Shown here in pieces: positions 1,915-18,375 of a stretch of 21,748 nucleotides of DNA (positions are counted from its first letter, which is position 1; each line of letters begins with the position of its first letter). The stretch is from Octopus sinensis (lineage: Eukaryota): assembly GCF_006345805.1 (NCBI RefSeq), contig NW_021823636.1:1-21748 (forward strand). The letters run 5' to 3'. The notes under the pieces were generated by a model that was not told the origin of the DNA, searched no databases, and was given only the letters and a program-made list of their open reading frames with translations. Made by a program: the position numbers and the translations under genes.

Positions 1915-2115
1915 TAATGCAAAAACACTCACAAAGAGTCAATAAAATAAAAACAAAATTTTAAAATCTATTCTTGCTGTGCTGATGGGATTGGGCATCT
2001 TAGTCTACATGGATCCACTTTTAAAAGTAGTAGTTATGTTTTGTTCGTTTAAGAGCTGTGAAAGATGTAAATAACATGAAAGGTCTGTGCAAACGACTAT
2101 ATTTTGGACTTACGT

Positions 2116-2349
2116 AAGGCGGCGAGCTGGCAGAAACGTCAGCACGCCGGACGAAATGCGTAGCCGTATTTCGTCTGCCGTTACGTTCTGAGTTCAAATT
2201 CCGCCGAGGTCGACTTTGCCTTTCATCCTTTAGGGGTCGATAAAATTAAGTACCAGTTACGCACTGAGGTCTATGTAATCGACTTAATCCGTTTGTCTGT
2301 CTTTGTTTGTCCCCTCTGTGTTTAGCCCCTTGTGGGTAGTAAAGAAATA
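2116..2349 (+). mobile_element. Full-length SINE family B (tRNA-derived head, GCCTTTCATCCTTT..GGGTCGATAA central domain, tail ...AAAGAAATA)
   Basis: A-box-like TGGCAGAAACG and B-box GAGTTCAAATTCC; perfect 18-bp TSD TATATTTTGGACTTACGT at 2098-2115 and 2350-2367. Confidence 0.93.
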
Positions 2350-2536
2350 TATATTTTGGACTTACGTGACGCCAGCCATTCAACAATCTCGAACGAACAG
2401 TCACGCTTGGAACTATTGAGGACAAGCGCCAGTGTGCGATACGGCGTCAGTGGTGGACTGATGACGTAAAACCAGTGAATAGGCAACCACATGCTGACAA
2501 TTACCCTAACGAATTCCATTGATATATACTTGGCCA

Positions 2537-2553
2537 GTACTTGCTTCGGCAGT

Positions 2554-2593
<40 letters not shown>

Positions 2594-2646
2594 AGCCTCT
2601 GCGCAAGGATGACACGGAAATTCGTGAAGCGTTCCATATAAAAAAA
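2537..2646 (+). pseudogene. U6: Full-length U6 snRNA retrocopy with A7 tail
   Basis: GTACTTGCTTCGGCAGTACATATACTAAAATTGGAACGATACAGAGAAGATTAGC...GTTCCATAT (2537-2639) is collinear with U6; ACAGAGA box at 2577-2583. Three changes from the human U6 sequence in the conserved core (2594, 2598, 2617). Ends in A7 rather than a T-run and sits inside a LINE remnant without a visible upstream promoter. Confidence 0.95.
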
Positions 2647-2648
2647 TA

Positions 2649-2805
2649 TCTGAGTTCAAATTCCGCCGTGGTCGACTTTGCCTTTCATCCTTTCGGGGTC
2701 GATAAATAAAGTACCAGTTTCGCACTGGAGTCGATGTAATCGACTTAATCCCTTTGTCCTTGTTTGTCCCCTCTATGTTCAGCTCCTTGTGGGCAATAAA
2801 GAAAT
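2649..2805 (+). mobile_element. 5'-truncated SINE family B fused to the U6 copy
   Basis: tctgagttcaaattccgccg...aataaagaaata matches 2116-2349; U6 + SINE are flanked together by ATATATACTTGGCCA (2522-2536, 2806-2820). Confidence 0.92.
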
Positions 2806-2964
2806 ATATATACTTGGCCAGGAAGTCAGCAGGAGTCAATCGTCGACTTGGAACAACAACCAGTAGGAGTTATGTGTCAAGTTCATACTATATATGAGTA
2901 TGTATTTGGGCAAGTATAGTTTTATATGAGTATGTGGTAACGGTGCGCGGTCGTGTGTGTATAT

Positions 2965-3380
2965 CAGGGACGTGCAGCCTGAGTAGGCAAGGTAAGCAGT
3001 GTCTACCCTGGATAAATAAAATACATCGATAGTAACACTTTCCTTTTATGGCAAAATATGCACATAATTCAATAAAACTATGAAGGTTACTCTGGTTACT
3101 ATGCACAAAGTGCAAAATATTTTATTTTCTAGTAGATTAGGTAGGCATAATTCGCTCCTGCCTTTCAATCTCAGTATTAAAGCTACGCATAGGACTGCTG
3201 TAGCACACATGCTGCGTACATTCCTACAACTTTTTTCTTTACGCGTTATAAAGGCAGAAGTAAATCTGCCTCCAACTCCGTCGCGCGCCTGTTTCGCTTA
3301 TCTTATTTATTTGTTTATTTTTTTACTACATAAACATCACCAACTGCCTACCCTGAGTATTTACTGACGGCACGTGACTG
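2965..3380. mobile_element. Non-autonomous hAT-like MITE (416 bp)
   Basis: Imperfect TIRs CAGGGACGTGCAGCC / reverse complement CAGTCACGTGCCGTC (11/15), subterminal GTAGGCA / TGCCTAC motifs, 8-bp TSD GTGTATAT (2957-2964) / GTGTGTAT (3381-3388), 7/8 identical. Confidence 0.6.
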
Positions 3381-3389
3381 GTGTGTATA

Positions 3390-4143
3390 CAGAGTGTTCG
3401 GGCTAAATTTGACGATCATCCTTATGTCTCCTTTTTGTTTGTTTGTTTTTTTTGGGGGGGGGTCAGGAAGCGCTTGATGTATTGGTAAATAGTCAACGGC
3501 GTTGGAGAGCATGAATATTAAAGTTGTTGTTGAGAAAAAGTTAGCTGACATGGATGACTGGAAGCCATTTGAATATTAGGAAAGAGTTGCTTGAATCATG
3601 CTGGTTCGCGCCGGGTATCAAAGTGCCGACACCACGACTGCTGCTCAATGCTCTGTGGACACTGTAAAGGCTGAAAGACATGGAATGGACAGCCGCAAAG
3701 GAGACAACGAAACTGTGGCCAGCAGAGAGAGAGAGAGATACAGCAGGCTTTCTCACTGCGTCCGCATGTCGGAACTCATCGCCACATCTTTGAACGGGAT
3801 CTTAGGCTTAATTCAGACGGCTATGAGAAGCTGCTGGAAAGCTGTGGTCAATCCCTGGCTGGTGAAGGTTACTGCTGGAAGGCCATATGTGTGGCAGCAG
3901 GATTCGGTTCCTTGCCACCCACACCTCCAGTGGGAGTCAGAAGTGGTTGTCGGAGAATTTCTACGACTTCACCAGCCACAATTTCTGGGTCCCTAATTCT
4001 TTTGGTTGTAAGCCTATGGTGTAATATGTGTATGTCGTGGTTGAGAAAGACACCAGCCGCTCAGCCTACAACACCACGACTAAGCTAGTGGCCAAGACCA
4101 AGATGTTCGAAGATCTTCTCATCAGGGACACAGTGAAGAATGC
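3390..4143 (+). mobile_element. Tc1/mariner DD37D (maT-type) transposon relic, internally deleted and 3'-truncated
   Basis: TA|CAGAGTG terminus at 3388-3396. Decayed ORF from ATG 3550: N-terminal MDDWKPFEY*...MLVRAGYQSA...CVRMSELIA joined directly to HIFERDLRLNSDGY..LL(fs)VVNPWL...GRPYVWQQDSVPCH(fs)TSSGSQKWLSENFYDFTSHNFWVPNSFGCKPMV*YV. After removing a CCAC duplication there are 37 residues between the QQD aspartate and the third catalytic position (now V). Confidence 0.85.
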
Positions 4144-4157
4144 ATATATATATATAT

Positions 4158-4237
<80 letters not shown>

Positions 4238-4255
4238 TATACATATATATAATAT

Positions 4256-4305
<50 letters not shown>

Positions 4306-4357
4306 CATATCTATATATATATATACATACATATATATATACATATATATATATATA

Positions 4358-4438
<81 letters not shown>

Positions 4439-4460
4439 ATTATATTATTATATATATATA
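4143..4460. repeat. ~320-bp interrupted (TA)n microsatellite
   Basis: Direct reading. Confidence 0.97.
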
Positions 4461-5967: not shown

Positions 5968-6066
5968 TTGTTGTTGCAAGGACAAATGAAGAGAGAGAAA
6001 AGTAATGGTATCAGCTCATCTCGCTCTCATGTAAGACTAAAGCTGAATCTCATAAATTTATCAGCT

Positions 6067-6146
6067 GTCAGGATGGCCGAGCGGTCTAAGGCGCTGCGTT
6101 CAGGTCGCGTCGGGTTTCCGGCGTGGGTTCGAATCCACTTCTGACA
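6067..6146 (+). tRNA. tRNA-Leu-CAG: tRNA-Leu(CAG), probable pseudogene (two single-base deletions)
   Basis: GTCAGGATGGCCGAGCGGTCTAAGGCGCTGCGTTCAGGTCGC...GGTTCGAATCC...TTCTGACA; intact acceptor stem, anticodon CAG at 6101-6103, long variable arm, T6 terminator at 6153-6158. The anticodon stem lacks one A (CGC-G) and the T stem lacks one C (CC-AC). Confidence 0.9.
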
Positions 6147-6560
6147 AGTTGATTTTTTCGCCTTCCTGTGATGTCCTGTACGTATATATATTTATATATG
6201 CATGTATATATACATGTAGATGTCGGTACGTACATATATGTTTGTATGTATGCATATATTTTATTTATTACACAATATATATATATATATATATATATTA
6301 TATAATATATATATAATATAGATATAGATATATATATATAGGTGTGGGGAGAGTTCACGAAAAAACAAAAGACGAAGACAGGTGGTGTACAAAACAAACA
6401 GATGTATTATTATAACGCTCGGGAATTGAAAAAGTCTTTTACGCTCTTCTACAGAAAGGGACATAAAAAAATAACAAGGAGAGAAACAAGGAGAGAAAAA
6501 AAATGTGTGTAGTGGCTACCGATCTATCATGGCGGCTGATATATATATATATATATATAT

Positions 6561-10400: not shown

Positions 10401-10613
10401 TTCTATAGGCACAAGGCACAAAATTTTGAGGGAGGTGAGGGCTAGTCGATTATATCGTCTCCAGTACTCAACTGTTACTTATTTCATCGACCCCGAAAGA
10501 ATGAAAAGGAAAATCAACCTTGGCTGAATTTGAACTCATCGCGTAAAAATCAGGAAAAAATTGCCGCTATGCATTTTCTCTGGCGTGCTAACGAATCTGC
10601 CAGCTTGCCGCCA
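10401..10613 (-). mobile_element. SINE family B (second tail type)
   Basis: atcgaccccgaaagaatgaaa...aatttgaactc...ggcgtgctaacgaatctgccagc. Confidence 0.85.
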
Positions 10614-10633
10614 CGCTGGATCTTAACGATGCT

Positions 10634-11060
10634 TTCGAATTTTGGGCACAAACCAGCCTTTTCTGGGGAAGGTTAAGTCGATTGCATTGACGCCAGGGCT
10701 CAACTGGTACTTATTTCTTTGAACCCCGAAAAATGAAAAGCAAAGTCACCCTGGCGGAATTTGAACTCACAACCTAAAGTTCTGAAAAAATTCCACTAAG
10801 CATCTTGTTCGGCGTGCTAACGATTCTTATTTCTTTATTGCCCATAAGGGGCTAAACATAGAGGGGACAAACAAGGACAGACAAACGGATTAAGTCGATT
10901 ACATCGACCCCAGTGCGAGACTGGTACTTAATTTATCGACCTCGAAAGGATGAAAGGCAAAGTCGACCTCGGCGGAATTTGAACTCAGAACGTAACGACA
11001 GACGAAATACGGCTACGCATTTCGCCCGGCGTGCTAACAATTCTGTCGGACCGCCGCCTT
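10634..11060 (-). mobile_element. SINE-B/SINE-B composite (10634-10827 plus 10828-11060)
   Basis: Tail TATTTCTTT starts at 10828 directly after GGCGTGCTAACGATTCT; that 17-mer recurs at 11028-11044 with one mismatch. Confidence 0.9.
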
Positions 11061-11905: not shown

Positions 11906-12881
11906 ATTGGTTGACTAGTATGTTGTTGTTTAGACTCGGATCGACTGCGACTCAGCAGACCTATGAACACTGGCGTTCCATCCGTGACCATCCATCTTTT
12001 TTTATTGGTTAACTAGTGTGTTGTTGTTTAGACTCGGATCGACCGTGACTAAGCAGACCTATGATCACTGGCGTTCCAGCCGTGACCATCCATCTTTTTT
12101 TATTGGTTAACTAGTGTGTTGTTGTTTAGACTCAGATCGACCGTGACTAAGCAGACCTATGATCACTGGCGTTCCAGCCGTGACCATCCATCTTTTTTTA
12201 TTGGTTAACTAGTGTGTTGTTTAGACTCAGATCGACCGTGACTAAGCAGACCTATGATCACTGGCGTTCCAGCCGTGACCATCCATCTTTTTTATTGGTT
12301 AACTAGTGTGTTGTTGTTTAGACTCAGATCGACCGTGACTAAGCAGACCTATGATCACTGGCGTTCCAGCCGTGACCATCCATCTTTTTTTATTGGTTAA
12401 CTAGTGTGTTGTTTAGACTCAGATCGACCGTGACTAAGCAGACCTATGATCACTGGCGTTCCAGCCGTGACCACCCATCTTTTTTATTGGTTAACTAGAA
12501 TGTTGTTGTTTAGACTCAGATCGACCGTGACTAAGCAGACCTATGATCACTGGCGTTCCAGCCGTGACCATCCATCTTTTTTTATTGGTTAACTAGTGTG
12601 TTGTTGTTTAGACTCAGATCGACCGTGACTAAGCAGACCTATGAACACTGGCGTTCCAGCCGTGACCATCCATCTTTTTTTTATTGGTTAACTAGTGTGT
12701 TGTTGTTTAGACTCAGATCGACCGTGACTAAGCAGACCTATGATCACTGGCGTTCCAGCCATGGCCAGCCATCTTTTTTATTGGTTAACTAGTGTGTTGT
12801 TGTTTAGACTCAGATCGACCGTGACTAAGCAGACCTATGATCACTGGCGTTCCAGCCGTGACCATCCATCTTTTTTTATTG
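11906..12881. repeat. Minisatellite, 10 units of 94-99 bp
   Basis: Units start at 11906, 12004, 12102, 12200, 12294, 12392, 12486, 12584, 12683, 12780; consensus ATTGGTTAACTAGTGTGTTGTTGTTTAGACTCAGATCGACCGTGACTAAGCAGACCTATGATCACTGGCGTTCCAGCCGTGACCATCCATC(T)6-8. Confidence 0.97.
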
Positions 12882-13147: not shown

Positions 13148-13355
13148 TTTCTAATAAAGGCACGAGGCAATCAGTATTGAGAGGAAGTTGTCTAATAAAT
13201 GCCATTACGCCAGTAATTGGCAGATACTTTATCGATATTGAAAGGATAAAAAGCAGAGTTGACCTCAACGGGATTTGAACTCAGTGGGTAGAGATCCGGA
13301 AGAGATACTACTAAGTATTTAATCCGGCGCTCTAATGATTTTGCCAGTTTACGGC
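13148..13355 (-). mobile_element. Highly degenerate SINE family B copy
   Basis: tttatcgatattgaaaggataaaaagcagagttgacctc...gatttgaactca...ggcgctctaatgattttgccag. Confidence 0.65.
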
Positions 13356-13383
13356 GATATTCATTGGTCGGTAATTAAGTTTT

Positions 13384-13777
13384 TATAATTTGGAGCATAA
13401 GGCCAGCAATTTTGTGGGGAGGTGGCTAGTCAATTACGTCGACCCCAGTATTCAACTGGTACTTATTTTATCGACCCCGAAAGGATGAAAGGCAAAGTCG
13501 ACCTCGGCGGAATTTGAACTCAGAACGTAACGGCAGACGAAATACCTATTTCTTTATTGCCCACAAGGGGCTAAACACAGAGAGGACAAACAAGGACAGA
13601 CAGAGGGGTTATGTCGATTACATCGACCCCAGTGTGTAACTGGTACTTAATTTATCGACTCCGAAAGGATGAAAGCAAAGTCGATCTCGGCGGAATTTGA
13701 ACCCAGAACGTTAGGACAGACGAATGCCACTAACCATATTGTCCGGCGTGCTAACGACTTTACCAGCTTGCAGCCTT
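13384..13777 (-). mobile_element. SINE-B/SINE-B composite (junction 13546|13547)
   Basis: ...ggcagacgaaatacc|tatttctttattgccc..., the reverse complement of the junction at 18220|18221. Confidence 0.9.
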
Positions 13778-17993: not shown

Positions 17994-18375
17994 AAGGTGG
18001 CGGGATGGCAGAAACGTTAGCACGCCGGGCAAGATGCTTAGCGGTATTTCGTCTGCCGCTACGTTCTGAGTTCAAATTCCTCCGAGGTCGACTTTGCCTT
18101 TCATCCTTTCGGGGTCGATAAATTAAGTACCAGTTACGCACTGGGGTCGATATAATCGACTTAATCCCTTTGTCCTTGTTTGTCCTTTGTGTTTAGCTCC
18201 TTGTGGGTAGTAAAGAAATAGGTATTTCGTCTGCCGTTACGTTCTGAGTTCAAATTCCGCCGAGGTCGACTTTGCCTTTCATCCTTTCGGGATCGATAAA
18301 TTAAATACCAGTTGCGTACTGGGGTTGATCTAATCGACTGGCCTCCTCCCCAAAAATTTTGGGTTTTGGACACGA
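17994..18375 (+). mobile_element. SINE-B/SINE-B composite (junction 18220|18221)
   Basis: Full head and type-1 tail ...taaagaaata|ggtatttcgtctgccg... followed by a type-2 tail gactggcctcctcccc. Confidence 0.92.

Follow-up and report, generated by a model that had tools for sequence, protein, structure and literature searches.

Anatomy of the U6-SINE unit

The window, a 21.7-kb stretch of octopus DNA along whose whole length all coordinates are counted, contains a copy of the spliceosomal U6 small nuclear RNA (snRNA) joined to the 3' portion of a short interspersed element (SINE), all on the plus strand and bracketed by one direct repeat. From left to right, the unit consists of a left target-site duplication, ATATATACTTGGCCA (2522-2536), which abuts nucleotide 1 of U6; a full-length U6 retrocopy without a T-run, extending from nucleotide 1 to ...CGTTCCATAT (2537-2639); a junction filler, AAAAAAATA (2640-2648), which lies outside both U6 and the SINE consensus; a 5'-truncated SINE corresponding to consensus positions 72-233 (2649-2806); and a right target-site duplication, again ATATATACTTGGCCA (2806-2820). 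A full-length SINE of the same family and orientation lies 172 bp upstream of the unit (2116-2349, plus strand), flanked by its own 18-bp duplication, TATATTTTGGACTTACGT (2098-2115 and 2350-2367). The best reading of the unit is that a dead U6 copy was joined to the 3' part of a common octopus SINE and that the two were inserted as one piece. An earlier note, made from the sequence alone, had described a complete U6, then A7 and a SINE truncated just before its B-box, all within a perfect 15-bp direct repeat, and each of these elements was recovered in our analysis.

Scanning of the window with Rfam detected U6 (RF00026) at 2537-2643 on the plus strand with a score of 102.4 bits against a gathering score of 44, and the match covered model positions 1-105 without truncation. 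When the region 2000-3000 was rescanned at E <= 1, U6 was the one strong match to a non-coding RNA. In the sequence itself, the U6 body extends from G2537 to ...CGTTCCATAT (2639) and lacks the terminal T-run, and at five positions where the model consensus has U the window copy has A. For natural U6 genes, a metagenome scan was carried out with the exact first 57 nucleotides of the window U6 as the query, and the downstream sequence was extracted from the 84 loci returned, which are genuine environmental U6 genes that share these 57 nucleotides with the window copy. Natural genes that are long enough continue GGCCCCTGCGCAAGGATGACACGCAAA(A/T)TCGTGAAGCGTTCC..., most of them with CCA(C/T)AT before the T-run, the exceptions being two loci, L010 and L016. 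A T-run closes all 73 genes (of the 84) whose contig reaches the 3' end; it measures T3 in contigs that are cut there and at least T4 in the others, with a single interruption in two cases. The natural 3' end reads CCA(C/T)ATTTTT, whereas the window copy reads ...CCATAT and then A7TA.

Several natural loci (for example L002, L019, L023 and L061) are identical to the window U6 everywhere except for three private substitutions and the tail, and the donor was therefore an ordinary, normal U6 RNA. The three substitutions (A2594, T2598 and G2617; a divergence of 3/103) fall at sites that are invariant in every one of the 84 natural genes extending there. Because the T-run terminator of a functional U6 gene is absent after 2639 and the invariant U6 core is altered at three sites, the window copy is a dead pseudogene, with substitutions acquired since insertion. 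A TATA-like sequence at the usual upstream spacing is also absent, and the sole TATA-like stretch lies at -14 to -7. The earlier note had regarded the 5' stem as compensated (A2539-T2553) and had taken this to suggest that the donor was the host's own U6. That argument did not hold, because the stem GTACTTGCTTCGGCAGTAC with its A3-U17 pair is a widespread natural U6 variant and not a host-specific compensation.

Three further U6 copies were noticed in database sequences. The loci L010 and L016 (PJEL010091600.1 and PJEL010160271.1) carry the same 20 nucleotides upstream of U6 in both metagenome contigs, but the U6 sequence breaks off at a different internal point in each (following GGCCCCTG in one, GGCCCCTGCGCAA in the other) and gives way to unrelated sequence; they may be 3'-truncated U6 copies or assembly chimeras. 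In an ENA contig of 4066 bp, the database 'protein' P0003 is translated from the antisense strand of a U6 that runs into about 12 A (...GTTCCATT plus the A-run), and this locus is probably a U6/poly(A) processed pseudogene of another eukaryote in a metagenome.

BLAST of 2647-2805 against the window identified four more long SINE copies and several shorter relatives. Alignment of the five long copies produced a 233-nucleotide consensus ending AATAAAGAAATA; the family 3' end reads ...CTTGTGGGCAATAAAGAAATA, and the five copies do not differ in its last nine bases, AAAGAAATA. The SINE of the chimera starts with TCTGAG (2649) at consensus position 72 of 233, the first 71 nucleotides being missing, and this start lies 3 nucleotides before a B-box-like motif, GAGTTCAAATTCC. 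It reaches the invariant end of the family, ...AATAAAGAAATA, at 2806, and it differs from the five-copy consensus by seven substitutions in 162 positions and one 4-bp deletion. The B-box-like motif was recognized by eye, and Rfam detected no tRNA in 2000-3000 even at E <= 1; a tRNA origin of the SINE head was accordingly set aside. In 76 kb of O. bimaculoides DNA, one SINE copy with the same tail was found beside an assembly gap, and its tail is followed by AATAAT.

In three other SINE copies of the window, the terminal ...AAAGAAATA is followed directly by another 5'-truncated SINE unit, with junctions at 18220/18221, 13547/13546 (minus strand) and 10828/10827 (minus strand). The dimeric copies at 17994-18360 (plus strand) and 13777-13400 (minus strand) each consist of a full-length unit ending ...AAAGAAATA and a second unit that is truncated at the same point (GGTATTTCGTCTGCC...) and has a different 3' part (...ATCGACTGGCC.CCTCCCCA.AAAATT). 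These two share the identical junction AAATA|GGTATTTCG but have unrelated 5' flanks, and the dimer therefore seems to have propagated itself. At 10444-11060 (minus strand), about four SINE-related units are arranged head to tail; the first is full length and ends AAAGAAATA, and the unit that adjoins it directly is shortened by about 17 nucleotides. Flanking duplications were looked for around the arrays at 10444-11060, 13228-13777 and 17994-18360, and none was found, so these dimers and arrays were dropped as candidates for single-event chimeras. They show that head-to-tail joining at SINE 3' ends is common here and recurs with this machinery, which does not show that each joint arose in a single event.

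The whole window was scanned for exact repeats of at least 15 bp spaced 100-600 bp apart. After microsatellites, a 98-bp satellite and SINE-to-SINE homology were removed, only two pairs were left: 2098/2350, which is the 18-bp TATATTTTGGACTTACGT around the full-length SINE at 2116-2349, and 2522/2806. Even with two mismatches allowed, ATATATACTTGGCCA occurs in the window only at 2522-2536 and 2806-2820, and its edges coincide with nucleotide 1 of U6 and with the last nucleotide of the SINE. Since only two such unique repeats exist in the window and the edges of this one fall exactly on the U6 and SINE ends, it is a real target-site duplication, far beyond chance. Its length is 14 nucleotides with certainty and 15-16 at most, because the SINE itself ends with A2806, the first base of the right repeat, and G2821, to which the repeat finder stretches the match (16 nucleotides), equals G2537, the first base of U6 and a possible 16th duplicated base. 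Both duplications, that of the chimera and that of the neighboring SINE, are of similar length and begin with TATAT directly after ...AAAGAAATA. This common start suggests the same endonuclease preference, with the outer repeat of the chimera resembling a duplication of the SINE's own and the right edge resembling an ordinary insertion of the family.

The earlier note had placed the insertion inside a remnant of an RTE element. We took the two SINE insertions out of the sequence and translated what remained, a reconstruction of the empty site, in all six frames. Pfam detected no endonuclease or reverse transcriptase domain in these frames, the sole match being a sub-threshold one to TBP (E = 0.058), and the concatenated frames matched nothing at E <= 0.01 among 5.8 billion proteins. 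BLAST found no paralogue of the flanks in the window. The RTE context was therefore abandoned as unsupported, although a non-coding remnant of an untranslated region may still be present.

The joint between U6 and the SINE

The joint consists of A7 (2640-2646) and TA (2647-2648), and it contains no T-run. Human U6/LINE-1 (L1; LINE, long interspersed element) junctions carry 4-8 T, which correspond to the U-tail of mature U6 (PMC6789731). The earlier note had pointed out that mammalian junctions usually keep the T-run and that the A-run here is unusual, and the missing T-run is indeed a real difference. The filler AAAAAAATA is also foreign to the SINE, because the consensus reads ...GTTACGT before TCTGAG. 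The joint thus suggests that the acceptor RNA was not mature U6 but one with a different 3' end. Mature U6 ends in a 2',3'-cyclic phosphate, which is a substrate of the RtcB ligase (PMC6789731); the lack of T and the nine extra bases at the joint argue against ligation of mature U6.

We then compared the filler with the SINE tail. Together with the final AT of U6, the filler forms ATAAAAAAATA, which is identical at 10 of 11 positions to the invariant SINE 3' end, ATAAAGAAATA, and it occupies in the chimera the place that the complete SINE tail occupies in the dimers. With at most one mismatch, the tail motif was found 12 times, versus 1.6 expected per window upon shuffling; five of these matches are true SINE tails, six are unrelated background and one is the junction itself. 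On the other hand, A7 followed by TA accounts for 9 of the 385 A-runs of at least 5 nucleotides in 98 kb of octopus DNA, and the lone mismatch between joint and tail is precisely the G that would break the A-run. For these reasons, the match was dropped as proof of a copied SINE tail.

The two explanations, U6 oligoadenylation and the copying of a short piece of SINE tail, have likelihoods of the same order and are equally good readings of the filler. The proposal of the earlier note that the acceptor was an oligoadenylated U6 is reasonable, but it is matched equally well by the alternative. Polyadenylated snRNAs from nuclear surveillance have been discussed as templates for retrotransposition, and an early template switch from the L1 tail has been proposed for U6/poly(A) pseudogenes (Doucet et al., PMC4476161). 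If the tail was copied, the unit would be tripartite: before jumping to U6, the enzyme would have paused briefly on the tail of another SINE or LINE RNA, in analogy to the proposed switch from the L1 tail and to known triple chimeras (PMC4476161, PMC2104539).

Origin of the unit

The order of left duplication, U6, junction, 5'-truncated SINE and right duplication is that predicted for a single chimeric integration. U6 is complete, in sense orientation and directly abuts the left duplication, and the SINE abuts the right duplication with its exact family 3' end. No separate boundary repeat was found around U6 and the filler alone. Around the SINE alone only AAATA was found, which the earlier note had named as a possible sign of two insertions. 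Because it is the terminal sequence of all five window SINE copies, AAATA is not a sign of a second insertion, and it could hide a duplication of at most 0-5 bp, versus the clear family duplications of 18 and 14-16 bp. The divergence of the U6 part (3/103) is not distinguishable from that of the SINE part (7/162; Fisher p = 0.74), which is compatible with a common arrival but not decisive. Also in favor are the recurrent head-to-tail joints of other SINE copies in the window and the published U6 chimeras with L1, L2 and RTE LINEs and with the SINEs Mon-1 and AnolisSINE2, which were ascribed to template switching (PMC4476161).

We consider that the unit is probably a one-off bipartite, possibly tripartite, chimeric retropseudogene that was produced by a single target-primed event, the reverse transcriptase having passed from SINE RNA onto a U6 RNA without the U-tail. 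The endonuclease/reverse transcriptase of the LINE that mobilizes the octopus SINE would have nicked the target just before (A)TATATACTTGGCCA, and reverse transcription would have been primed on the SINE RNA at its specific 3' end, ...AAUAAAGAAAUA. The enzyme may then have copied 158 nucleotides and left the SINE template 3 nucleotides upstream of the B-box, continuing at the 3' end of a U6 snRNA without a U-tail and copying through to nucleotide 1. Second-strand cleavage 14-16 bp downstream would have generated the duplication. Candidates for the LINE are RTE, CR1, Dong-R4 and L1-Tx1 elements, all of them abundant in octopus. The 9-nucleotide A7TA was most likely templated, either by a short A-rich 3' extension of a trimmed U6 (an oligoadenylated RNA of the decay type) or by the 3' tail of another SINE or LINE RNA on which the enzyme briefly halted. 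The earlier note had proposed one integration event, with a reverse transcriptase that moved from SINE to U6 or copied a pre-ligated RNA. The single event is supported by the layout, the one bracketing duplication and the equal divergence, although arrival in one step is unproven; the ligated RNA is disfavored by the missing T-run.

Several points weigh against this reading. The unit is one copy in one genome, and simultaneous arrival is deduced from its structure alone. The 9-nucleotide filler allows more than one explanation, and the flanks gave no reverse transcriptase or endonuclease signal that would point to a partner LINE. The TATAT start is based on two insertions, and the third family copy, that of O. 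bimaculoides, is followed by AATAAT. Finally, the dimeric SINEs lack detectable duplications and two of them share a junction, which may reflect the spread of one dimer family and not separate template jumps.

Such propagation is pertinent to the explanation that the junction of U6, A7TA and SINE formed once in the master copy of a U6-headed SINE family and that this locus is a retrotransposed daughter, which we regard as unlikely. A daughter copy would show the same head, linker, SINE body, tail and single duplication, and the dimer with one junction at two unrelated sites (13547/13546 and 18220/18221) indicates that chimeric units do propagate here. The chimera retains the B-box-like motif and contains no T4 run before about 2920. 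The annotation of O. vulgaris lists 'SINE/U' (one family, 369 kb) and 'SINE/U-L1' (PMC13282606), and a precedent for snRNA-headed SINEs exists in SINEU (PMC4494074); however, the published SINEU heads are derived from U1 or U2. The upstream promoters of animal U6 genes would not be carried by a retrocopy, and the window copy has only the TATA-like stretch described above. Moreover, a U6 part with only three substitutions relative to natural U6 is what recent copying of the gene product would give. A second copy was sought in the window, in the 76 kb of O. bimaculoides and among junction-spanning database proteins, and none was found, these being searches of almost no power. A minus-strand open reading frame (ORF) that spans the junction (2561-2839) had four matches among 5.8 billion proteins, none of them across the junction: two comprised only the SINE (one from O. 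bimaculoides) and two were unrelated U6 antisense ORFs. The same ORF had no record in the contig index, the O. bimaculoides stretch contained no U6, and the metagenome scan with U6 nucleotides 1-57 returned no octopus DNA among its 84 U6 genes. A pattern of the U6 3' end, 0-30 nucleotides and the SINE B-box had zero matches in prokaryote genome and viral collections, which is uninformative since the SINE is absent from both too. That the unit is a member or the founder of an octopod composite SINE family with a U6 head, with the A7TA linker as a fixed family feature, is very unlikely. If it were so, the 5' end would come from U6, the retained B-box and tail of the SINE would be what polymerase III and the LINE recognize, and the family would be the first class of SINEs headed by U6 sequence.

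Two sequential insertions would produce a similar final arrangement, either through a U6 with a short A-rich tail and a 15-bp duplication into which a truncated SINE was later inserted, between tail and right duplication, or through a SINE that received U6 at its 5' edge. With the SINE taken out, the sequence reads U6-AAAAAAAT-ATATATACTTGGCCA, which is self-consistent as a U6/oligo(A) pseudogene; AAATA stands on both sides of the SINE; some LINE endonucleases favor A-rich tails as targets; and tripartite structures have been explained in this way in the literature (PMC4476161). However, with the 3' AAATA being the invariant SINE end, the second duplication would shrink to 0-5 bp, and the second insertion would have had to strike an interval of 1-5 bp. 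The SINE-first order leaves U6 without any duplication. Furthermore, U6/poly(A) pseudogenes were not observed with specific-3'-tail LINEs in a vertebrate survey (PMC4476161), and the right duplication opens with TATAT directly after the SINE tail, as at the neighboring SINE, which fits the outer duplication being that of the SINE insertion. We give the two-step history little credence. A single integration of a pre-formed chimeric RNA appears comparably improbable; here an RNA ligase would have joined U6 to a SINE fragment by the RtcB route, or transcription of a U6 locus would have read through into a downstream SINE. Experiments have demonstrated ligation for human U6/L1, and RNAs other than L1 can also be joined to U6 (PMC6789731); the overall architecture of the final DNA would be the same. 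Nevertheless, RtcB needs the cyclic phosphate of mature U6 on a tail of 4-5 U, and the joint here has no T and nine extra A-rich nucleotides. Read-through is unlikely given the T-run that closes 73 of 73 natural U6 genes reaching the 3' end, and read-through from a real U6 gene was rejected on this ground. Transfer from SINE RNA to a U-tail-less U6 thus remains our preferred explanation of the unit.

Relation to known chimeras and other features of the window

U6 chimeras are a familiar by-product of reverse transcription by LINEs. Chimeric retropseudogenes of U6 and LINE-1 in mammals were reportedly described by Buzdin in 2002, Gilbert in 2005 and Garcia-Perez in 2007. Like the octopus unit, those chimeras consist of a complete U6 in sense orientation whose 3' end is joined to a retroelement truncated at its 5' end, are surrounded by one duplication (6-19 bp in mammals) and carry no U6 promoter or terminator (Doucet 2015, PMC4476161; Moldovan 2019, PMC6789731). 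Unlike in mammals, the partner here is a SINE with a specific, non-poly(A) tail, the joint is A7TA instead of 4-8 T, and the host is a mollusc. The earlier note had considered a SINE partner unusual, which is contradicted by the literature: U6/L2 and U6/Mon-1 in platypus and U6/L2, U6/RTEX-2 and U6/AnolisSINE2 in Anolis have been published (Doucet 2015, PMC4476161), Mon-1 and AnolisSINE2 being SINE partners, and the Anolis partners comprise L1-like, L2-like and RTE-like LINEs in addition to AnolisSINE2. Doucet et al. concluded that template-switch chimeras are the only kind formed by LINEs with a specific 3'-tail requirement (PMC4476161). In those chimeras, as here, U6 is joined to a SINE or LINE with a specific tail and not a poly(A) tail. 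The platypus chimeras mostly contain a 5'-truncated U6 and have duplications of 1-9 bp, whereas the octopus unit has a full-length U6, a duplication of 14-16 bp and a new taxon as its host.

Other composite retrosequences share single features with the unit. Tripartite chimeric retrogenes of mouse and human and the MINE and WEIRD elements of Magnaporthe (PMC2104539) would be comparable if the filler is a tail copy, giving U6, tail and truncated SINE through two jumps, but the middle part here would be just 9-11 nucleotides long, with one mismatch to the tail. SINEU elements are crocodilian SINEs with U1- or U2-derived heads, for which template switching has been proposed as the means of head gain (Kojima 2015, PMC4494074). 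They resemble the octopus unit in having snRNA sequence at the 5' end of a SINE-like body; they are multi-copy families, and the U6-headed unit is a single copy. In U6/poly(A) pseudogenes, and in oligoadenylated U6 decay intermediates, U6 is likewise followed by an A-run. The former have been attributed to a recruited polyadenylated snRNA or to an early template switch from the LINE tail (Doucet et al., PMC4476161). The A-run here differs in being 7 nucleotides long, followed by TA and internal between U6 and SINE, not at the 3' end of the insertion.

Chimeras of U6 have been catalogued in mammals, monotremes, reptiles and a bird (PMC4476161), and our literature searches turned up no report of one from a mollusc. 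Cephalopod genomes consist of about 12% SINEs and contain several active LINE clades (PMC13282606). The unit differs from those described in its mollusc host, in the combination of a full-length U6 with a long duplication, and in the A-rich, mildly unusual joint without a T-run; the SINE partner and the involvement of a non-L1 enzyme are not new. U6 chimeras are markers that a LINE reverse transcriptase can switch templates or copy ligated RNAs, and one clear case that combines a full-length U6 with a non-poly(A) SINE and a long duplication suggests that cephalopods share this process. Given the missing T-run at the joint, the RtcB-ligation route of human cells may not apply here. The U6-SINE copy itself is a neutral pseudogene with no expected function.

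Elsewhere in the window, ARAGORN and Rfam (36.9 bits) detected a tRNA-Leu(CAG) at 6066-6147 on the plus strand, between AT microsatellites. Because a T6 run lies 8 nucleotides downstream (...GACAAGTTGATTTTTTCG), it looks like a genuine polymerase III tRNA gene. At about 3600-4150 (plus strand), frameshifted ORFs (...GRPYVWQQDSVPCH... and ...SQKWLSENFYDFTSHNFWVPNSFGCKPMV...) resemble by eye the C-terminal part of a mariner/Tc1-type transposase; this resemblance is unconfirmed, and Pfam gave no match to these ORFs even at E <= 5. The satellite mentioned above occupies 11906-12881 and can be scored either as 10 copies of the 98-bp unit or as 5 copies of 192 bp, at 95-96% matches. Very long microsatellites are present at 209-1637 and 4144-4460, namely (ATGG)n of about 360 bp, (TATG)n of about 680 bp and (AT)n of about 320 bp, and they yield many spurious long ORFs on both strands.

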